Source: Lepidodermella squamata (taxonomy: Eukaryota > Animalia > Gastrotricha). From it: a stretch of DNA of 64,000 nt. The position numbers and the translations under genes were made by a program. Shown piece after piece: positions 17,498 through 35,808 of the stretch. Below the pieces are notes generated by a model that searched no databases, had not been told where the DNA came from, and saw only the letters and a program-made list of their open reading frames with translations. Location of the stretch: contig JBLDXI010000033.1 of the NCBI GenBank assembly GCA_047495785.1, forward strand, positions 2,418,001 through 2,482,000. The letters run 5' to 3'. Positions within the stretch are counted from its first letter, which is position 1, and every line of letters starts with the position of its first letter.

Positions 17498-20400
17498 TTA
17501 TTTGCGACCAGCTACTTTCAGTTTACGCACCGCTGCAGCTTTCGGTCGATTCGAGGCGGCGGCGCCAGATGAAAACAATAAGGGGCCATCGCCTCCGGGT
17601 GTGGCGGCGGCGGCGGGAGAGAAGCCACCGCCAGCGTTGAAGACGAAAGCGGGAGGTTGTGGGGTAGCGGCGAGTGGAGTTGGTCCTGACGTAGGGTTTC
17701 CAGCCGAGAAATTGAACGCAGGTGCCGCATCGAACTTGAATCCTCCAGCCGAGCCATTGGTTCCAGCTGAAATCATTTTGTAAAGTCAAGCTAATAAAGA
17801 ATTATCTCAAAATAACAACGAACCATTATTTCCAGTGGCGGTCGAGCCAAAAGTCGGGACGCTCGAGGCGAAATTGAATGATGGTGCGGTTGAGGCCGCG
17901 GTCGAAGCCGGCTGAGGAGCCAGCGATCCAAAGGCGAAAGGCGCTGGGGTGGCTGCTGCAGCGGGGGCGGCGGGTTGGCCGAACGCAGGCGCTGCAGATC
18001 CTCCAGTAGACGGCGCGCTTTGACCGAAGGCGAACAAGCCGTTGGTAGCAGGTGGCTGTTGCTGAGCGGGTGCAGCGGCAGCGCCGAAGCTGAACGGCGC
18101 GGGGGCGGCTGTGCTAGTCGCTGCAGTGGTGGAGCCGAAACTGAACGCGGCCGGGGTAGAACTAGCAGCTGTAGAGGCAGCAGCAGCAGCAGCTGAACCG
18201 AACGCAAAAGCCGGGGCCGATGACGCGTTCGAAGTAGTCGAGCCGAACGCAAAGCCACCAGTCGACGCCGAAGAGGCGGGCGCGGCGGTAGAGCCGAACG
18301 AGAAGCCGGACGATGTGGTCGTGGCGTTAGCTGCGGCCGGGGTCGAGCCAAATGCGAAGGCTGGCACGGTGCTTGGCGCTGAAGTCGCCGCTGCTGTCGA
18401 TGATGAGCCAAACAAAGGCGCGGATGAAGTCGTCGAGCCGAAGAGGCTGCCCGTCTGAGTAGTCGCTGGGGCGCCGAAAGTGCTCGTAAACGACGGAACT
18501 GCCGACGCAGAAGAGGCAGGGGCTGATCCGAAAAGAGATGATGGCGCTGAGGTCGTGCTTGCTGATGTTGCCGGGGTGCTGCTGCTGAAAATCGACGGGG
18601 CAGTCGAGGCAGGCGCGGCCGACGAAGGAGCACCGAAGACAGAACCAGTTGCGGACGAACCGAAAACTGGAGCCGCCGTTGAAGTCGCCGCTGATGGCGC
18701 ACTAGTTGCGGCAGTGCTGCCGAACGAAAACGCGAAACCTCCGGCTGACGGAGCCGATGAGGTGGGAGCAGTGGTTGCGGCTGGCTTCGCGAGACTGCCG
18801 AAGCTGAACCCGCCGGCAGATGAAGATGTCGTCGCGGCCGGGGCAGCTGCGCCGAAAGCGAAACCCGGTGCAGCTGCTGGGGTAGGTGCACTCGATGAGG
18901 TCGTTGAGGGCGAAGATGCGCCGAATTTGAAACCGCCCATCGACGGGGCAGCAGTGGAGGTCGCAGTTACCGGCGCTGAAGTGGCTGCCGGAGCAATGCC
19001 AAAGGAAATCGCCGGCGCTGCATCGGCTGATTTCGACGGTGCGATACCAAAAGCGAAACCGCCGTTAGTAGCCGGGGCAGAAATGCCGAATTTGGGCGCT
19101 TCTGCGGCCGGTTGTTTCGGCGCATTTGGACTTGGCGCCTCGCAAGCAGCGCATTTAGCCGCCTCCTTCTTGTTTTTGATCATACAGACATCACAAGACC
19201 ATTCACCCTCCTTCGCCGTGAACAAATTGCCGAAACCAGCCGGTTGTTTCGGCGCATTTGGATTGGGCGATTCGCAGGCAGCACATTTAGCTGCGTCTTT
19301 CTTGTTCTTGATCATGCACACATCGCAAGACCATTCGCCATCCTTAGGTGCAAACAGATTGCCGAAGCCTGTGCTGGTCAACGGTGCGGCAACTGACGAG
19401 GTCGTTGAGGTGGAAGGCGCAGTTGTTTCGGTTTTCGCCCCGGATGATTTGACAGTTTCTGAGCCGAAAATCGGCGCAGGTGTCGGGATCGGTGCCGTCA
19501 CACTGGTGGTAGTGGCTGTAGCAGTCGATAGCCGCACAGATTCCGAGGTGATTGGTAGAGAAATCGGGGGTAAGTCGATCTTGGGCAGCTCTATCTTTGC
19601 AGCTGGCTGTTCGGCCTTCGAAACCGCGGGCAAACCATTGACAGCCGGAACTTCGGCCGAGGCAGGCTTGCTAGGCGGCGCTTGAGGTTTTGGTGCGCTG
19701 CAAAGATCGCATACAGTAGCAGAACGAGGATTCATGTGTTGGCATCCGCAAACCCAGCCGCCTTCCATGGTGGCGCGGCGCTTCAGTCGAGATGACGCAC
19801 CAACCGCCGGGGTCGCACTTGGCACACTTGTGTTCAGCTCGGTAGCGGCAGCCGTGTTAGTAGTCGCCGTTGAACGAGAGCAGCGAGAGCAAGAAATCGC
19901 CTTGAAGTCATTCATTGACAAACAGTTGTTACAACGCCATTGACCAACAACCCCACCCGTAACTGGAGCCGGGGTGGATAACTCCTCGATCTTCTTAGGG
20001 GGCAGCGGATTCGAAGACATGACGAACGGGGTGGAAGTTGCAGATGGGCCACCAGTTAGAGTTCGAGATGGCGGTTCGATGGTGTTTGGAATCGGAAGTG
20101 TCGGTTTCTGTTGTTCTACCGATGAAGTTTCAGGAATAGACTTCCTTATACGTTTCACAGCAACATCTGGTTCGCTCTCTGCCCGATTGCTGCTGACTTT
20201 CGACCGACCGCATGAAAAGCAGTAGTCGTTTGCGTCACTGTTAGCGATATCGCAATCAGAACATGTCCAGATGGAGCCAGCCGAGCCACAGTTGGCGTCG
20301 ACGAGAACGCTCGGGGCGGTTAGAACGAACTTGCTTGACACTGGGAGTTGAACTCCGTTCGTGATTTTCCCAGTTGCAATAGGTTCGTGACTGGCGAGAG

Positions 20401-21839
20401 AGGGCGATGCGAAACGAAACGCCGGCTTTGGTGCTTGCGTTTCCATCTGACGGATAGCGACGGGTTCGACTTTGGCTGCTGGGGTCTCGATTGCTTCAGC
20501 CTTCGGTCGAGAGAAAAATTGGGCAGGGTCGATTAGATGCACACGCGTTGGGTCGACGGGTGCCATCTGGGGTTTTGTGATAGTCGCCGATGTCAATTGC
20601 TGGTATGCTTTGGCAAGGCGTTGGGCTGTCGGGTTCGCTGCGACAGGCGCCGATAGCAACGGGGCGCGAACCAGAGGAGAGTGAGAAGAAGGTTTTGCTG
20701 ATGACACGTCCAACCGCACGACACGAGGAGCCAGAGGGCTCTGTGGCCGAGGGGATGACACGGCCATGAGAGGCGACGATCGAGCTGGAAACCGGTCCAA
20801 CGTGTTATAAGGAGTAGCCTCCATTTTTTCGGAATTGAAATGTGGAGTCATTGTTTTCGTTTCAAATAGACTAACACGCCTCTTGGCTCCTAAGGGTGTT
20901 GTCAAAGAAGAAGTATCCCCAGATAGCGCACTTCCGAACTCCCGAGACACAGGTCTATGACTCAGCGTTGAAGGTAGAGTCATAGAGCTATAACGATCGC
21001 TTTCCCGAATCGAATTTTGAAGCGAAGTAGTTTCTACCAAAGGAGCTGCTCGCAGTGACGATGCCAAAGGCTGGGAGTAAACCGGAGGGTCTACTGGACG
21101 AGATGTGACTGTTACAAAATGTTGCCGTGAATAAAAATCAAGTTCGCAAATTGTTATATCAACTCACTTTCATCAAGCCTTCTTTGCTTCAGGGCGCTCC
21201 ATGGCGCTGCGAAGGACTGATTTGCTCCGTCTGATTTATACGGGACATTAGATGGCAAAGAAGACTGAACGTCTCCTAGACCCCTTTTCAATGATGTTGC
21301 CAACCGACTTCCGATTTCAGCCGTATTGGCAGAAGACGTTAGATTATTATTAATGTTATTAGCGCTGCTCAACACTGCCGACGTAGTAGCAGATGTGGCC
21401 AATGACGGCATATTATTGCTGAGCGCAATGTGACTAGTTGATGGCATATTGCCAGCATTCATGTGGTTCATTACAGACAATTCTAAAAAAAAAAAGAAGA
21501 AACCAATAATCAAATGCGTTTTGATGTTTCATACGAACCTGAAGCTTTCCGCTGCATTGCTGCACTGACCAAATTCTGGCGACTTCTCCTCCTTATGATC
21601 CTCGTAGACGTGTCCGGCTTCTCAGGCGCTTTCTGAGACTTTCCACCAATAAGAGATTGAAAGACGTTTTGGCAAACACTGCGAAACTTGGAGAAGACCC
21701 CAGCTTTATTCTGAGGCTGCTCCACTTCCTCTTCTTCCATTGCAACATCCTCATCATCGGAAATAACATCATCTGCACTTATCGGTCCATTAACACCCCC
21801 ATTGCTAGCAGAATGCGAGCCGAGGCTGTGAATCGACAT
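17498..21839 (-). CDS. NUP153: Nuclear pore complex protein Nup153
   Basis: Five RanBP2-type zinc fingers (e.g. WSCDVCMIKNKKDAAKCAAC), a long FxFG/FG repeat region and a basic C-terminal tail (RKLKVAGRK). About 4 exons. Confidence 0.88.
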
Positions 21840-26399: not shown

Positions 26400-27127
26400 A
26401 TATCCTATAAAACTTGGAGTTATTAAATACGATACCTTTTATCAAGCTTTTCCCGGTCTATGGCTAACTTTTGTTAATGGAAACAGTTGGCGTATACACT
26501 GTTAGCTAACAACATCAGGTGGATTTTGTAAAATCGATCGTGAAGTTGATTGCCAACTCAGGTCGGTTTTGTATGGCAATGAAATTATGTGAAATTATAT
26601 AGTTATACGGCCATCAGAAACTGAGATGCACGCGATTCACATGAGAGTCCCTTGTAAACAGAAATGAGCGTGCTTTCTGCGCAAATCTCTGACAATTTTG
26701 CCTGAATTCTGATGCCAATATTTCTGCAATCTGGTTTCACCGATTCGATTATAATTCCATTGCTATACGCGCGCAGCCCTCTGATCTGATCATTACAGCT
26801 AACAGTGTATCGATCGACTGTTCTTTACCTTCCAATGAATACTTGCATGCTAATAATCCTGACTACTCAACTGTTCCTCCTCAGTTTTTATTTCGCTTGC
26901 TCCTGTCACCATCCCGAAATCTTTAGTTCGATGATACTATTATTTCCTGTAACAACTTGATGCCAAATAAGTTTGCATATTTGGGAGACACGCGTTTTAT
27001 GTACGACAAACCATTAGCCGATCGTGTATCATCTCTGAATCTAGTTTTGGTTGAGTCTTTTCTTCTGAATTGTAACCAACTTGTTGCTTCAAATCGGTCA
27101 CACTTAGGAGGATGCGAATGCTATTGA
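26400..27127 (+). pseudogene. Decayed ORF of unknown family; second partial copy at ~32996-33414
   Basis: 26708-27127 reads about 140 codons (SDANISAIWFHRFD...SHLGGCECY*) with one internal stop, and further broken frames lie upstream. The second copy has an extra frameshift. Confidence 0.4.
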
Positions 27128-27439
27128 TTGATATGAATTGTTTCTTCTGTATTCACAATTGTTACATGTTTCAATGAGCAAGTCGTTCTCTCCTTCATTT
27201 GTTCCTCTCTTCATTCGCTCGTTATGGCAAATTATCGAATTTGAAGTATCTTCGGACAGCTTTTGATGAGACGTGGAAAATATTATAAAATGCTATTAAA
27301 AACAGCGCTTGTTCTTGGGCCGTTTTCTTGGCCGAAATGATTAAAGGTCATTTAATACTTGAGTCGAAAATAAGATTTCAATGACACTAAAATGCTAATC
27401 TTTTGTTTCGCTTAGTGTTTTACAAAAAAGTTTGAGTTC

Positions 27440-27672
27440 ATGGGTAGCTGCGTATCTCGAAAGGAGCGACAGCCGTCGCAAATTTGGCTACAGCCGTTAA
27501 CAATTTAAAGACTCAGGTTGAAGCTGGATTCTTGGCGACGAACGCCCGCATCGACACAACGAACGCCGCGACGAACGCCCGCATCGACGCGACAAATGCC
27601 CGACTTGACGCGCTTGGCAGCCGTCTTAATAATGCGGAGAACGCAATTGCATTAATTGCTGCTCCTCCCCAG
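27440..27672 (+). pseudogene. Frameshifted copy of small lipidation-motif coiled-coil gene
   Basis: The ATG frame reads MGSCVSRKERQPSQIWLQPLTI*; the coiled coil is in another frame and exon 2 is missing. Confidence 0.75.
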
Positions 27673-28247
27673 GTATGGTCTCAATTTGTTGAATCTGTTG
27701 AAAATCGGTCACACTTAGGAGGATGCGAATGCAATTGATTGATATGAATTGTTTCTTCTACATTTACAATTGTTACATGTTTCAATGAGCAAGTCGTTCT
27801 CTCCTTCGTTGCTCCTCTCTTCATTCGCTCATTATGGCAATGCGTTTTTTTTTGTTTTAATGGCTATTAAAGCATATATATAGCCGTACTTGATCTAGAC
27901 GATCTCATATTTGATTTGACATATTATAACATTATTTAATAGTGTAATGTTTGCATATTTCACATGCATGAGAGTCTCTTGCAACCAGAAATGAGCGTGC
28001 TTTCTGCGCATATCTCTGACAATTTTGTTACATGTTTCAATGAGCAAGTCGTTCTCTCCTTCATTTGTTCCTCTCTTCATTCGCTCGTTATGGCAAATTA
28101 TCGAATTTGAAGTATCTTCGGACAGCTTTTGATGAGACGTGGAAAATATTATAAAATGCTATTAAAAACAGCGCTTGTTCTTGGGCCGTTTTCTTGGCCG
28201 AAATGATTAAAGGTCATTTGATACTTGAGTCGAAAATAAGATTTATT

Positions 28248-29634
28248 TATCCGTTGAGCATTCGTTGAGCAGAATTATTTCCCGTGCTCAATATAATTGT
28301 GCACTGTTAAGCATTTCGTTGTGCAGTCATTGTGCAGCCTTTAGGCGATTGAGCAGTCATTGAGCAGTCATTGCGCTGTCATTGCGCAGTCATTAAGCAT
28401 TCGAGTAGCGAACGTTGAGCACTTTGGGCAGTGTTTACGCACCCATTGTGCAATCATCAATTTTCGCTTTAAGCACTCGTTGAGCAGTCAAATTTTTAAA
28501 AATTGCAGAGAAATTCATAAAAATCCGTCAGGGCGGGAAATCGAACCAGTGACTTTGAAGATCGAGGCCTGCAATCGAATCGATTGCGCCACTGGTTCGC
28601 TTCGAAAATCAATCACAAAAAACCGATTTAGCGTGGATTTTTTATATTTTGCCGTATTGGCAGTAGGCACCACTGCCGTCATTGGCCGTTTTTTTACAAA
28701 CGGCCAGTTTCGGGATTCGGCAGTATTGCCATTTGCCAGTATAAATTCATAGAAAGTAAAAAAAAACAAAAAAACCAATGAAAAATCGGTCGTGACCGGG
28801 AATCGAACCAGTGACTTTGAACATCGAGGCCTGCAATCGAATCGATTGCGCCACTGGTTCGCTTCGAAAATCAATCACAAAAAACCGATTTAGCGTGGAT
28901 TTTTTATATTTTGCCGTATTGGCAGTAGGCACCACTGCCGTCATTGGCCGTTTTTTTACAAACGGCCAGTTTCGGGATTCGGCAGTATTGCCATTTGCCA
29001 GTATAAATTCATAGAAAGTAAAAAAAAACAAAAAAACCAATGAAAAATCGGTCGTGACCGGGAATCGAACCAGTGACTTTGAACATCGAGGCCTGCAATC
29101 GAATCGATTGCGCCACTGGTTCGCTTCGAAAATCAATCACAAAAAACCGATTTAGCGTGGATTTTTTATATTTTGCCGTATTGGCAGTAGGCACCACTGC
29201 CGTCATTGGCCGTTTTTTTACAAACGGCCAGTTTCGGGATTCGGCAGTATTGCCATTTGCCAGTATAAATTCATAGAAAGTAAAAAAAAACAAAAAAACC
29301 AATGAAAAATCGGTCGTGACCGGGAATCGAACCAGTGACTTTGAACATCGAGGCCTGCAATCGAATCGATTGCGCCACTGGTATCGGGTTGATATCGGAA
29401 CCAGAAATTGACTGATCAATGACTTGGTATATTTTCAATAATTATTGGTGTGCTCAACGCGTGTCATACGACGTGTTAAGCACATTTTGAGCACATTTTG
29501 AGCACTTTTTGATGATTCATCCTCTGGTTAAGCTCTAGTTGTTCACGAATTGAGCGCAAATTGTGCACTGCTTTAGCACACGTTGAGCAAATTGAGCACA
29601 GGTTTAGCAATTGAGCAAAAATGCTCAACGGATA
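28248..29634. mobile_element. Non-autonomous TIR DNA transposon (1387 bp) inserted in one array unit
   Basis: Perfect 15-bp TIRs TATCCGTTGAGCATT (28248-28262) and AATGCTCAACGGATA (29620-29634). Many subterminal TTGAGCA motifs. Absent from sister units, whose empty site is AATAAGATTTCAATG. Candidate TSD TTTATT. No transposase. Confidence 0.9.
28536..29382 (-). repeat. 262-bp tandem repeat (~3.2 copies) containing tRNA-like A-box/B-box cassettes
   Basis: GGGAATCGAACC at 28798, 29060 and 29322, with a variant at 28536. The minus strand reads GTGGCGCAATCG...GGTTCGATTCCC followed by T-runs. Confidence 0.88.
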
Positions 29635-29704
29635 TTTATTATTCAATGACACTAAAATGCTAATCTTTTGTTTCGCTTAGTGTTTTACAAAAAAGTTTGA
29701 GTTC

Positions 29705-29937
29705 ATGGGTAGCTGCGTATCTCGAAACGAGCGACAGCCGTCGCAAATTTGGCTACAGCCGTTAACAATTTAAAGACTCAGGTTGAAGCTGGATTCTTGG
29801 CGACGAACGCCCGCATCGACACAACGAACGCCGCGACGAACGCCCGCATCGACGCGACAAATGCCCGACTTGACGCGCTTGGCAGCCGTCTTAATAATGC
29901 GGAGAACGCAATTGCATTAATTGCTGCTCCTCCCCAG
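29705..29937 (+). pseudogene. Frameshifted copy of small coiled-coil gene
   Basis: Same lesion as the 27440 copy; one substitution near the 5' end (AAC for AAG). Confidence 0.75.
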
Positions 29938-30565
29938 GTATGGTCTCAATTTGTTGAATCTGTTGAAAATCGGTCACACTTAGGAGGATGCGAATGCAAT
30001 TGATTGATATGAATTGTTTCTTCTACATTTACAATTGTTACATGTTTCAATGAGCAAGTCGTTCTCTCCTTCGTTGCTCCTCTCTTCATTCGCTCATTAT
30101 GGCAATGCGTTTTTTTTTGTTTTAATGGCTATTAAAGCATATATATAGCCGTACTTGATCTAGACGATCTCATATTTGATTTGACATATTATAATATTAT
30201 TTAATAGTGTAATGTTTGCATATTTCACATGAATATCTCTTGCAACCAGAAATGAGCGTGCTTTCTGCGCATATCTCTGACAATTTTGTTACATTTTCAA
30301 TGAGCAAGTCGTTCTCTCCTTCATTTGTTCCTCTCTTCATTCGCTCGTTATGGCAAATTATCGAATTTGAAGTATCTTCGGACAGCTTTTGATGAGACGT
30401 GGAAAATATTATAAAATGCTATTAAAAACAGCGCTTGTTCTTGGGCCGTTTTCTTGGCCGAAATGATTAAAGGTCATTTAATACTTGAGTCGAAAATAAG
30501 ATTTCAATGACACTAAAATGCTAATCTTTTGTTTCGCTTAGTGTTTTACAAAAAAGTTTGAGTTC

Positions 30566-30798
30566 ATGGGTAGCTGCGTATCTCGAAAGGAGCGACAGCC
30601 GTCGCAAATTTGGCTACAGCCGTTAACAATTTAAAGACTCAGGTTGAAGCTGGATTCTTGGCGACGAACGCCCGCATCGACACAACGAACGCCGCGACGA
30701 ACGCCCGCATCGACGCGACAAATGCCCGACTTGACGCGCTTGGCAGCCGTCTTAATAATGCGGAGAACGCAATTGCATTAATTGCTGCTCCTCCCCAG
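30566..30798 (+). pseudogene. Frameshifted copy of small coiled-coil gene
   Basis: Same sequence and lesion as the 27440 copy. Confidence 0.75.
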
Positions 30799-31430
30799 GT
30801 ATGGTCTCAATTTGTTGAATCTGTTGAAAATCGGTCACACTTAGGAGGATGCGAATGCAATTGATTGATATGAATTGTTTCTTCTACATTTACAATTGTT
30901 ACATGTTTCAATGAGCAAGTCGTTCTCTCCTTCGTTGCTCCTCTCTTCATTCGCTCATTATGGCAATGCGTTTTTTTTTGTTTTAATGGCTATTAAAGCA
31001 TATATATAGCCGTACTTGATCTAGACGATCTCATATTTGATTTGACATATTATAACATTATTTAATAGTGTAATGTTTGCATATTTCACATGCATGAGAG
31101 TCTCTTGCAACCAGAAATGAGCGTGCTTTCTGCGCATATCTCTGACAATTTTGTTACATTTTCAATGAGCAAGTCGTTCTCTCCTTCATTTGTTCCTCTC
31201 TTCATTCGCTCGTTATGGCAAATTATCGAATTTGAAGTATCTTCGGACAGCTTTTGATGAGACGTGGAAAATATTATAAAATGCTATTAAAAACAGCGCT
31301 TGTTCTTGGGCCGTTTTCTTGGCCGAAATGATTAAAGGTCATTTAATACTTGAGTCGAAAATAAGATTTCAATGACACTAAAATGCTAATCTTTTGTTTC
31401 GCTTAGTGTTTTACAAAAAAGTTTGAGTTC

Positions 31431-31663
31431 ATGGGTAGCTGCGTATCTCGAAAGGAGCGACAGCCGTCGCAAATTTGGCTACAGCCGTTAACAATTTAAA
31501 GACTCAGGTTGAAGCTGGATTCTTGGCGACGAACGCCCGCATCGACACAACGAACGCCGCGACGAACGCCCGCATCGACGCGACAAATGCCCGACTTGAC
31601 GCGCTTGGCAGCCGTCTTAATAATGCGGAGAACGCAATTGCATTAATTGCTGCTCCTCCCCAG
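31431..31663 (+). pseudogene. Frameshifted copy of small coiled-coil gene
   Basis: Same sequence and lesion as the 27440 copy. Confidence 0.75.
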
Positions 31664-32295
31664 GTATGGTCTCAATTTGTTGAATCTGTTGAAAATCGGT
31701 CACACTTAGGAGGATGCGAATGCAATTGATTGATATGAATTGTTTCTTCTACATTTACAATTGTTACATGTTTCAATGAGCAAGTCGTTCTCTCCTTCGT
31801 TGCTCCTCTCTTCATTCGCTCATTATGGCAATGCGTTTTTTTTTGTTTTAATGGCTATTAAAGCATATATATAGCCGTACTTGATCTAGACGATCTCATA
31901 TTTGATTTGACATATTATAACATTATTTAATAGTGTAATGTTTGCATATTTCACATGCATGAGAGTCTCTTGCAACCAGAAATGAGCGTGCTTTCTGCGC
32001 ATATCTCTGACAATTTTGTTACATTTTCAATGAGCAAGTCGTTCTCTCCTTCATTTGTTCCTCTCTTCATTCGCTCGTTATGGCAAATTATCGAATTTGA
32101 AGTATCTTCGGACAGCTTTTGATGAGACGTGGAAAATATTATAAAATGCTATTAAAAACAGCGCTTGTTCTTGGGCCGTTTTCTTGGCCGAAATGATTAA
32201 AGGTCATTTAATACTTGAGTCGAAAATAAGATTTCAATGACACTAAAATGCTAATCTTTTGTTTCGCTTAGTGTTTTACAAAAAAGTTTGAGTTC

Positions 32296-32648
32296 ATGGG
32301 TAGCTGCTTATCTCGAAAGGAGGTTGACGATTTGGCGAAGAAGGTTGACGATTTGGCGACAGCCGTCAACAATTTAAAGACTCAGGTTGAAGCTGGATTC
32401 TTGGCGACGAACGCCCGCATCGACACCACGAACGCCGCGACGAACGCCCGCATCGATGCGACAAACGCCGCGACAAATGCTCGCCTTGACGCCCTAGGTA
32501 GCCGCATTAATGATGTGGAGAATGCTTTAATTGCTGCTCCTCCCCAGGTATGGTCGCAATTTATTGAATCTGCTCAATTTTTACACACACACACTCATAA
32601 TTTCAGGTTTGTCAAAAAATGATTTATCGCCGTCGACGACAATATTAA
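32296..32648 (+). CDS. Small (97 aa) coiled-coil protein with MGSCLS lipidation motif and Arg-rich tail
   Basis: Exon 1 32296-32547, intron 32548-32606 (GTATGG...TTTCAG), exon 2 VCQKMIYRRRRQY*. AATAAA at ~32698. Confidence 0.7.
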
Positions 32649-34220
32649 TACTTCATGTTTTGCAGAGTAAGTTATCTGTTTTGATTTGTTCATAGTTAAT
32701 AAAGCAGATTTTTACTGCAGTTCCTGACCTGCTTGCTGGCGCCGTCGACTTACCACTCGATTTCGACGAAGAACTAATATTCCTTATGGAATAAACTTTT
32801 TGAAAATTGTATCGACTCGAGCTCTTTCCATAAATCAACTGCTCATACTGGGACAAAATTATTATGATACGAATGTTATTGATTTATATTAATTGTTTCT
32901 TTTTTATTTAAAATTGTTACATGTTTCAATGAGCAAGTCGTTCTCTCCTTCATTGCTCTTCTCTTCATTCGCTCATTATGGCAACACGTTTGAAATCTGA
33001 TGCCAATATTTCTGTAATCTGGTTTCACTGGTTTGATTATGATTCCATTGCTATACGCGCGCAGCCCTCTGATCTGATCATTACAGCTAACGGTGTATCG
33101 TCGGCTGTTCTTTTCCTTCCAATGAATACTTGCATGTTAATAATCCTGATTACTCAACTGTTCGTCCTCAGTTTATATTTCGCTTGCGCCTGTCACCATT
33201 CCGAAATCTTTAGTTCGATGATACTATTATTTCATTTAAAAACTTGATGCCAAATAAGTTTGCATATTTGGGAGACACGCGTTTTATGTACGACAAACCA
33301 TTAGCCGATCTTGTATCATCTCTGAATCTAGTTTTGTTTGAGTCTTTTCTTCTGAATTGTAACCAACTTGTTGCTTCAAATCGGTCACACTTAGGAGGAT
33401 ACGAATGCTATTGATTGATATGAATTGTTTCTTCTGTATTCACAATTGTTACATGTTTCAATGAGCAAGTCGTTCTCTCCTTCATTTGTTCCTCTCTTCA
33501 TTCGCTCATTATGGCAATACGTTTTTTGTTTTAATGGCTATTAAAGCATATATATAGCCGTACTTGATCTAGACGATCTCATATTTGATTTGACATATTA
33601 TAATATTATTTAATAGTGTAATGTTTGCATATTTCACATGAATATCTCTTGCAACCAGAAATGAGCGTGCTTTCTGCGCATATCTCTGACAATTTTGTTA
33701 CATTTTTCAATGAGCAAGTCGTTCTCTCCTTCATTGCTCCTCTCTTCATTCGCTCATTATGGCAATACGTTTTTTGTTTTAATGGCTATTAAAGCATATA
33801 TATAGCCGTACTTGATCTAGACGATCTCATATTTGATTTGACATATTATAATATTATTTAATAGTGTAATGTTTGCATATTTCACATGAATATCTCTTGC
33901 AACCAGAAATGAGCGTGCTTTCTGCGCATATCTCTGACAATTTTGTTACATTTTCAATGAGCAAGTCGTTCTCTCCTTCATTTGTTCCTCTCTTCATTCG
34001 CTCGTTATGGCAAATTATCGAATTTGAAGTATCTTCGGACAGCTTTTGATGAGACGTGGAAAATATTATAAAATGCTATTAAAAACAACGCTTGTTCTTG
34101 GGCCGTTTCTTGGCCGAAATGATTAAAGGTCATTTAATACTTGAGTCGAAAATAAGATTTCAATGACACTAAAATGCTAATCTTTTGTATCTCATAGTGT
34201 TTTACAATATTGTTGAGTCA

Positions 34221-34580
34221 ATGGGCAACTGCGATTCGAGAAAGAAGAAGGTGGACAATTTGGCGGTAGCCGTCAAAAATTTGGCGGTAGCAGTCGAAAA
34301 TTTGACGGCAACCGTCCACCGTGGGTTCGAGGCCATCAATAATCTCAACGACGCGACGAACGCCCGCATCGACGCGACGAATGCCCGCCTCGACACGTTA
34401 GAAGGACGACTAGAACCGTTTGAAAGACGACTCGACACGTTGGACAGATTAATTCCGCTAATTGCTGCTCCTCCCCAGGTATGGTCACAATTTGTTGAAT
34501 CTGCTCAATTTATACACACACACTAATAATTTCAGGTGAGTCAAAAATTTGTGCAACGACGTAACCGCCGGCACGATTAA
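34221..34580 (+). CDS. Small (100 aa) coiled-coil paralog with MGNCDS motif and Arg-rich tail
   Basis: Exon 1 34221-34478, intron 34479-34535, exon 2 VSQKFVQRRNRRHD*. Diverged from the 32296 copy but the frame, lipidation motif and intron position are conserved. Confidence 0.7.
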
Positions 34581-34888
34581 TTTTTGTCCCGCTCGAGGTA
34601 AGTTGATTTTTTTTCTTGATGTTACCGCCGCTGCCGTTGATCTCGGCTATCTCATTTAATATGAATATTCATCTTGTTGATCCTTGGTTGCTCAAAACTT
34701 TTTGACGTTGTTTGTTAATTGAATTGTTGTTGCTCACTTTTCTCTGTTTTCTTGTATAAGTGATGCCTTTCTTGGCCTAGCTGAATATATCGCGAATTGA
34801 TTGAAAAGTACATTGATGACCCATTTTTGTTGTTTCTAATAGGTGTTTAAGATTTGAACGTTGATTCAAGCGCTTCTGATTCGTGAAA

Positions 34889-35808
34889 ATGGGGGCAAAA
34901 GGCAGCAAAACTGAGCAAGAAATGCTCACCAAGTACGAAAATGAAACATTTCTGTCAAAAGAAGAAATAACACAGTAAGCGAATTCGCGCATCTCGAAAA
35001 TGTTCGAACTTGAGCATATTTTTGTATTTCATCAGTGCTTATCGAATATTCGCATCGTTTTTCCCGGGCAACGTGGTACCTTCACTTGACTTTTCGCGAG
35101 TTTCAATGGTAGATCTGATGGAAAAGTTGCCGTTTTTGAAGGTATTTAATTTGATTTTGATGAAAGCGAAACTTTATCGTGAAAAACACAGTTTAACCCG
35201 TTTCGAGATCGGATAACCGCAGTGTTTTCGACCTACCCAGCTACATCGCCGAGTGATGGCACTAGTTTCAGCGTAACTACCCCTAACCGAGGTGAAATGC
35301 ATCTGTCACCGAGTGGCAGGCAGTTGGCTGCAACCGGCGGTTCTTGGTGCTTCGACGACTTTGTCCACTTTTTATCTGCCTTCAACGAAAAAGCGCCCGT
35401 GGGCCTGAAACACGAAGTCGCGTTTTGTATTTACGACAGCGACGGAGACGGCCACATCGGCGAGGCTGATTTGCTAAATGTCGTCCAGCGGCTGGTTGGC
35501 GATTTCAATGTCGACAACAACAGTGCGCTTCAAATCAATCAATCTGGCGAAGCCGGTGCTAACCCGTACGATGTTCACAGTTCGGAAAAATTGAAAGATG
35601 ACGAGTACACTCAAATTGTTGAACAAGTCTTTCACGAGGCCGATTTGGATCGCGATCGTCGAATGGGCCTAAAAGAATTCACGAATACAATGGGGAAATT
35701 TCCAGACTTTGCAAGGTAACATTTTCGCGAGTAAAATGTTGTCATGACATGACGCATTTTTGTGTTTCTAGGCATTTCTGCGTCCCATCGCTGCAAAACT
35801 ATGTGTGA
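34889..35808 (+). CDS. Calcium- and integrin-binding (CIB) family EF-hand protein
   Basis: MGAKGS N-terminus, TFLSKEEI, NPFRDRI, FDDFVHFLSAF, AFCIYDSDGDGHIG, EADLDRD and PDF motifs. 4 exons. Confidence 0.85.

Follow-up and report, generated by a model that had tools for sequence, protein, structure and literature searches.

Two intact genes of a largely broken family predict small acylated coiled-coil proteins in the gastrotrich Lepidodermella squamata

Six copies of a short sequence, each opening with the code for a lipidation-type N-terminus and continuing as heptad-like repeats, lie close together on contig 33 of the Lepidodermella squamata (Gastrotricha) assembly, within positions 2418001–2482000 (a stretch of 64,000 nucleotides, here called the window). 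The locus raises the question of whether these copies represent a genuine gene family, a decaying remnant, a prokaryotic acquisition or part of a mobile element. Judged from sequence, two of the copies, genes A and B, belong to a real family of acylated coiled-coil proteins, a reading that we consider somewhat more probable than its opposite; the membrane-tethering role proposed below for the products is rated lower. The genome searched was a 121.2-Mb assembly of 151 contigs, which was examined by protein, profile and DNA searches. The published assembly of this species comprises 122 Mb in 157 contigs and was produced from multiple-displacement-amplified DNA, with no chimeric contigs reported (PMC11660948). 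The assembly used here probably comes from amplified DNA of this kind, and exact tandem copy numbers are therefore given as assembled and are unconfirmed.

Exon 1 of the six copies starts at window positions 27440, 29705, 30566, 31431, 32296 and 34221, in agreement with the number of copies given by a first-pass annotation of this DNA. The last two are intact two-exon genes, as that annotation had also stated, encoding 97 residues in A (84+13) and 100 residues in B (86+14), and their introns lie at the coordinates that it predicted, both with the form GTATGG...TTTCAG. Introns in the window are generally short with acceptors of the TTTCAG type. The features of the two genes are as follows.

32296–32648, plus strand: gene A, consisting of exon 1 (32296–32547) and the coding part of exon 2 (32607–32648)
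32296–32547, plus strand: gene A exon 1, 84 codons, with the acylation motif, heptads, three hendecads and LIAAPPQ
32548–32606, plus strand: gene A intron 1, 59 nucleotides (nt)
32607–32666, plus strand: gene A exon 2, 60 nt, phase 0 at both ends, with an Arg-rich tail, a stop codon at 32646–32648 and then a GTAAGT donor
34221–34580, plus strand: gene B, consisting of exon 1 (34221–34478) and the coding part of exon 2 (34536–34580)
34221–34478, plus strand: gene B exon 1, 86 codons, with heptads only
34479–34535, plus strand: gene B intron 1, 57 nt
34536–34580, plus strand: coding part of gene B exon 2, 14 codons and the stop, with a GTAAGT donor 18 nt further on

Both proteins have the same layout, with an MG[SN]CxS[RK]K start, a predicted helix of 74 residues, the segment LIAAPPQ ending exon 1, and an Arg-rich exon 2. 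Gly2, Cys4, Ser6, the intron and the Arg-rich tail, previously singled out as retained features, are indeed common to the two genes. The tandem periods are 21 nt and 33 nt in A, corresponding to heptads and hendecads, and 21 nt only in B.

Comparison of the first exons of A and B gave a synonymous divergence (dS) of 0.93 and a non-synonymous divergence (dN) of 0.34, a dN/dS ratio of 0.36 (Fisher p = 5e-4), which contradicts neutral divergence; on this measure, A and B are old paralogs under purifying selection. Positive selection was rejected on the same ratio. The earlier suggestion that the family evolves like defence or gamete genes is thus not borne out, since the signature is purifying and not that of an arms race, and no mark of a selfish gene was found either, the upstream block shared by the copies being present at this locus only. 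In exon 2, the Arg run is kept in B with different Arg codons, and the frame is preserved only if the intron (55–59 nt) is removed. Reading through intron 1 as coding sequence was rejected because its lengths of 55–59 nt would break the frame of exon 2.

The splice between exons 1 and 2 is supported indirectly by a 5'-truncated copy at 644 kb on contig 3, in which intron 1 is missing exactly at the predicted junction and a second intron (see below) is missing too. This locus bears the signature of a processed copy made from spliced RNA, with no poly(A) tract or target-site duplication seen there. Since the copy is intronless at the exact junction, the splice is probably real.

Intron 1 is itself unusual, with 91–96% identity among A, B, a contig 3 copy at 686 kb and a contig 1 copy, against a synonymous divergence of 0.9–2.1 in exon 1. 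Over its final 18 nt, exon 1 is free of synonymous changes, and the intron element is present at six family loci only. It matched no Rfam family. A structured RNA or mirtron was considered and rejected, as the alignment fold contains one compensatory pair and no covariation energy, and the single-sequence fold has a z-score of 0.5. The near-invariance is most simply read as constraint on an element for splicing or regulation; repeated short-tract gene conversion is the alternative.

The predicted proteins start with MGSCLSRK (A) and MGNCDSRK (B). By direct reading, these N-termini fit a PROSITE-type myristoylation pattern and agree with the rules used here for myristoylation and palmitoylation (Met1-Gly2, an allowed residue 3, Ser, Thr or a small residue at 6, a residue other than Pro at 7, and Cys among the first 5–6 residues); three broken paralogs have the same pattern. 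The first-pass assignment of an acylation motif is thus supported in silico, MG[SN]CxS[RK]K being kept in five paralogs (A, B, the tandem copies, the contig 3 copy at 686 kb and a contig 26 copy) despite near-saturated synonymous divergence. In the A and B translations, neither a signal peptide nor a membrane-spanning segment can be seen.

AlphaFold2, run on exon 1 of A with a family alignment of four sequences, returned a single unbroken helix from residue 7 to 80, with a predicted local distance difference test score (pLDDT) of 94. The combination of heptad and hendecad periodicity with a long uninterrupted helix is that of a coiled coil. The first half of the helix has Val at the a positions and Leu at d, with B hydrophobic also at e and g, and the core of the second half consists of Ile, Asn and Thr. 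The Val a/Leu d pattern of the N-terminal half does not specify trimers, and the oligomer number is not readable from such a core. A lone helix of 74 residues is unstable, and oligomerisation is therefore presumed. The family appears to consist of lineage-restricted, small cytosolic proteins.

These features suggest how the protein might work. Met1 would be removed, Gly2 N-myristoylated and Cys4 palmitoylated, placing the protein on the cytosolic face of a membrane. The helices 7–80 of several copies would associate in parallel as a coiled-coil rod about 11 nm long. Its Arg-rich far tip may contact something acidic, for instance a second membrane, nucleic acid or the cytoskeleton. The product could thereby serve as a membrane-tethered spacer, tether or adaptor.

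The genome-wide count proposed by the first-pass annotation gave 13 loci, the six of the window and seven more, all seven of which are broken. The latter are on contigs 1, 3 (three loci), 26 and 28, and elsewhere on contig 33. The copy at 686 kb on contig 3 retains an MGNCMSKK start, the intron and exon 2, with a frameshift in exon 1; the copy at 2.40 Mb of the same contig is a fragment, the third contig 3 locus being the putative processed copy. The contig 26 copy starts with MGNCVSRKK and contains an in-frame TAG, and the contig 1 copy at 4.50 Mb is without a start. The copies at 1.80 Mb on contig 28 and 225 kb on contig 33 are short forms beginning with MGALKN, in which the acceptor AG has become GG; both lie within a duplicated segment of 97% identity (L018 1000–1480 on contig 28; 225313–225800 on contig 33). 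More distant copies, at about 70%, were observed 15–18 kb away on each contig. The birth-and-death mode of evolution suggested earlier fits the family, because 11 of the 13 loci are dead.

Four of these dead loci precede A and B in the window and form a tandem array.

27440–27672, plus strand: pseudogene copy 1, exon 1 of 233 nt with a frameshift after codon 9 and a stop at codon 23, no exon 2
29705–29937, plus strand: pseudogene copy 2, with the frameshift and truncation of copy 1
30566–30798, plus strand: pseudogene copy 3, exon 1 of 233 nt
31431–31663, plus strand: pseudogene copy 4, exon 1 of 233 nt
31958–32275, plus strand: shared upstream block of gene A, 97–100% identical in all six units
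33885–34201, plus strand: shared upstream block of gene B, 97% identical to the block of A
28240–29640, no strand assigned: non-autonomous DNA transposon of 1.4 kb bounded by terminal inverted repeats (TIRs), inserted in the upstream block of copy 2

The four dead copies are 865-bp tandem units of approximately 100% identity. The frame in which the coiled coil can still be read lacks an ATG and is closely preceded by a TAG, and the intron ends after about 26 nt in a local repeat, so that there is no exon 2. The copies are mosaic, with the 5' two-thirds A-like and the 3' third nearer the contig 3 copy at 686 kb, which indicates that family members recombine. It seems that a B-type locus together with its upstream DNA gave rise to the tandem units, and these dead partial copies would have been multiplied very recently by unequal crossing-over. 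Of the earlier description as a recently amplified gene family, the recent multiplication stands, whereas the multiplied units are pseudogenes and not working genes.

Over the 400 nt in front of the two genes, A and B share 97% identity, which breaks off at an acceptor-like AG located 22 nt before the ATG. The shared upstream block occurs nowhere else in the genome; its confinement to the array implies that the 97% identity reflects local homogenisation. The 5' leader (window 32275–32295) opens as AG followed directly by TGTTTTACA, both in the window copies and in the distant copy on contig 26 (L031, around 1284450, minus strand). This leader start may be a conserved trans-splice acceptor or a transcription start. 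A nematode origin of the DNA was rejected, the spliced leader SL1 being absent with up to one mismatch allowed. Additionally, a 300-nt direct repeat of 96% identity flanks the array, at 26814–27113 and 33101–33400.

The transposon within the array ends in perfect inverted repeats of 15 nt (28248–28262 and 29620–29634) with sub-terminal repeats of the TTGAGCA type. Its interior contains a 262-bp tandem repeat of 3.2 units, which resemble the 3' half of a tRNA; ARAGORN and Rfam reported no tRNA and no known RNA, either in the window or in the transposon. At least 10 further genomic copies share 78–98% identity with it, and the element was therefore recently active.

Databases were searched with A and B exon by exon. 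The statement that no known family is recognisable holds, as all Pfam, NCBIfam and PHROG models scored below their cut-offs. The best Pfam matches, HSBP1 (PF06825; 22.3 and 15.4 bits against a gathering cut-off of 28.6) and DUF7310 (PF23991; 20.7 and 19.3 bits against 40), are short coiled coils of similar length, but the helix is matched only in part, and neither family has an acylation motif or a basic tail. Lpp scored 7.5 bits against a cut-off of 29.1 in Pfam (LPP) and 14.1–14.3 bits against 43 and 108 in NCBIfam, and PHROGs gave weak matches only (best E-value 6e-5). Among PDB sequences, the influenza HA2 stalk, Lpp, HSBP1 and reovirus sigma-1 were matched, all with E-values of at least 0.017, so that the similarity to trimeric coils is weak and non-significant. 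Scores in the ESM Atlas were 0.84 or less, within the range of shuffled proteins, and nothing was found in viral contigs.

A HMMER profile search of 1.84 billion representative proteins returned 233 matches with E-values of 1e-3 or lower, none of which has an MGxC start or a LIAAPPQ end. A G-F-x5-R-h-D motif, followed by similar heptads, is found in 35 of the top 150 matches with the same spacing as the family's invariant Gly34-Phe35. Many of the matches have a signal peptide or a membrane-spanning helix as anchor. In uncurated prokaryotic and metagenomic coiled coils (P0005, P0006, P0009, P0013, P0019 and L044, a locus of a Bacillota metagenome-assembled genome), the motif likewise leads into T-N-A-R-[IL]-D heptads. 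These are membrane-fixed rods too, but by a membrane-spanning helix or signal peptide instead of acylation, and they lack LIAAPPQ and the Arg tail; the likeness is at the level of the motif.

A close counterpart in design is the bacterial alanine-zipper lipoprotein group of Braun's lipoprotein Lpp and OprI, which is likewise tiny and has an N-terminal lipid anchor, a parallel coiled-coil rod that acts as a spacer, and a basic C-terminal end contacting a second layer. The weak Lpp match begins at the lipidated Cys (PDB 9rld_L, E-value 0.019; NCBIfam, 0.035–0.052). In contrast to Lpp, the family has no signal peptide or lipobox and is encoded by animal genes with introns, and its predicted lipids are an amide-linked myristate and a thioester-linked palmitate on the cytosolic side. 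Lpp and OprI are, by this comparison of design, best regarded as analogues and not relatives. The design also resembles that of small dually acylated scaffold proteins of eukaryotes, such as AKAP18-alpha/AKAP7, Leishmania HASPB and the apicomplexan ISP proteins, which have less than about 100–150 residues and are targeted to the cytosolic face of membranes by an MG start and a nearby Cys, for myristate plus palmitate. None of these is known to be a coiled-coil rod of 74 residues that ends in an Arg-rich tip, and no sequence similarity to them was detected, although no search aimed at them was made.

Several observations weigh against A and B encoding a working acylated rod. Only these two of the 13 loci are intact, word searches of protein collections retrieved no spliced product of A or B and nothing with B, no relatives with this architecture were found outside the genome among the 1.84 billion representatives, and a basic patch far from the anchor is unusual for membrane binding of the myristoyl-plus-basic type. 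The first two of these, and the fact that the units multiplied most recently are pseudogenes, would be expected if the family were functionless and decaying, A and B being the last unbroken copies and their motif and tail relics. We regard this as improbable, since at a dS of about 0.9 the two genes keep their frames, splice sites, motif and tail under the purifying ratio given above, and the putative processed copy would attest past expression in the germ line. It is very unlikely that the six copies are the cargo or open reading frame of a mobile element, or that the array is an artefact of amplification or assembly. The near-identity of the units, the amplified source of the DNA and the presence of a real transposon in the array could be read in this way; however, the upstream block and the intron element occur at family loci only, and the clear match to a transposon reading frame that the first-pass annotation named as a refutation was absent, with no transposase or phage family passing its cut-off in Pfam or PHROGs. 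Moreover, one unit carries a private substitution and another has the 1.4-kb TIR transposon in its upstream block, as expected of real separate copies, and the published report mentions no chimeric contig for the species (PMC11660948).

A derivation of the rod from a widespread, uncurated class of membrane-anchored coiled coils of prokaryotes or phages, ancient or horizontal, with the membrane-spanning anchor exchanged for acylation, was also considered. Proteins of that class carry the motif L-x2-E-[MV]-x2-G-F-x5-R-h-D followed by xxxRhD heptads. The shared spacing and the profile matches described above speak for this reading, and BLASTP aligned P0013 with 44% identity over 86 columns. The hhalign probability was 98%, compared with 1% for the reversed query and 3% or less for column shuffles, but the set compared was chosen through the query's own profile and is not independent, so that this value is a lead and not proof of homology or transfer. 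Many of the matches, and the sole Bacillota locus found, have a signal peptide or membrane-spanning anchor. On the other side, coiled-coil repeats inflate scores, none of the matches extends over the N-terminal motif or LIAAPPQ, the curated families all stay below their cut-offs, and the genes have introns and animal-like flanks, with viral contigs blank. The viral or prokaryotic origin raised earlier is thus supported by a shared coiled-coil motif only, and we consider it unlikely. A real, acylated coiled-coil family of this genome remains the preferred reading.

Gene A extends beyond the two-exon model, with a putative third exon of coding-like character.

32667–32707, plus strand: putative gene A intron 2, 41 nt, with the GTAAGT donor at 32667, the acceptor at 32706–32707 and an alternative acceptor at 32720
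32708–32794, plus strand: putative gene A exon 3, 28 codons for an acidic-hydrophobic tail, with a stop that overlaps AATAAA

The segment is also found at the putatively processed locus on contig 3 (644 kb) and on contig 28. Its differences from these two paralogs fall mostly at the third codon position (4, 1 and 8, and 5, 2 and 9, by position), and each comparison shows 7 synonymous and 4 non-synonymous codon changes, a small sample; exon 3 of A thus looks like sequence that evolves as coding. Exon 2 measures 60 nt in A, 63 nt in the parent of the putative processed copy and 62 nt in B. Exon 2 of A has phase 0 at both ends, so that its skipping would place exon 3 directly behind exon 1 with the conserved frame intact. 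Read-through of the exon 2 stop into exon 3 was rejected, as frame-breaking indels lie between the stop and the exon end and the contig 3 copy at 686 kb has a double stop. It is possible, although doubtful, that exon 2 of A is a stop-carrying cassette, by which splicing would choose between the basic tail and the 28-residue acidic-hydrophobic one and so reverse the charge of the rod tip. In that case, the switch that governs splicing would consist of the near-invariant intron 1 (57–59 nt) and the 18 unvarying nt at the end of exon 1. What is left of exon 3 in gene B is degenerate and lacks an acceptor, which, with the 62-nt exon 2 of this gene, limits the cassette idea to the A lineage.

Two further features of the window were also noted. 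An EF-hand gene (Pfam EF-hand_7, E-value 7e-11) starts at 34889, approximately 310 nt past gene B (window 34581–35719), and its first residues, MGAKGSK, are also of the myristoylation type. An acceptor-like TTTCTAATAG is present near 34843, between the GTAAGT donor of gene B and the EF-hand gene, and the two genes may share a transcript or an operon. On the minus strand at 17807–21067, an open frame of 1086 residues contains RanBP2-type zinc fingers (E-value 7e-17) and sits where the G+C content of the window is highest (60% at 18001–20000).

If the products of A and B are made and lipidated, an animal would possess a minimal coiled-coil spacer tethered to a membrane, the eukaryotic equivalent in design of bacterial Lpp. 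The family also exemplifies birth-and-death turnover, including the tandem multiplication of dead copies. Furthermore, a near-invariant intron beside coding sequence close to synonymous saturation points to a splicing or regulatory element that has gone unrecognised. All of this comes from Gastrotricha, a phylum with almost no functional annotation.

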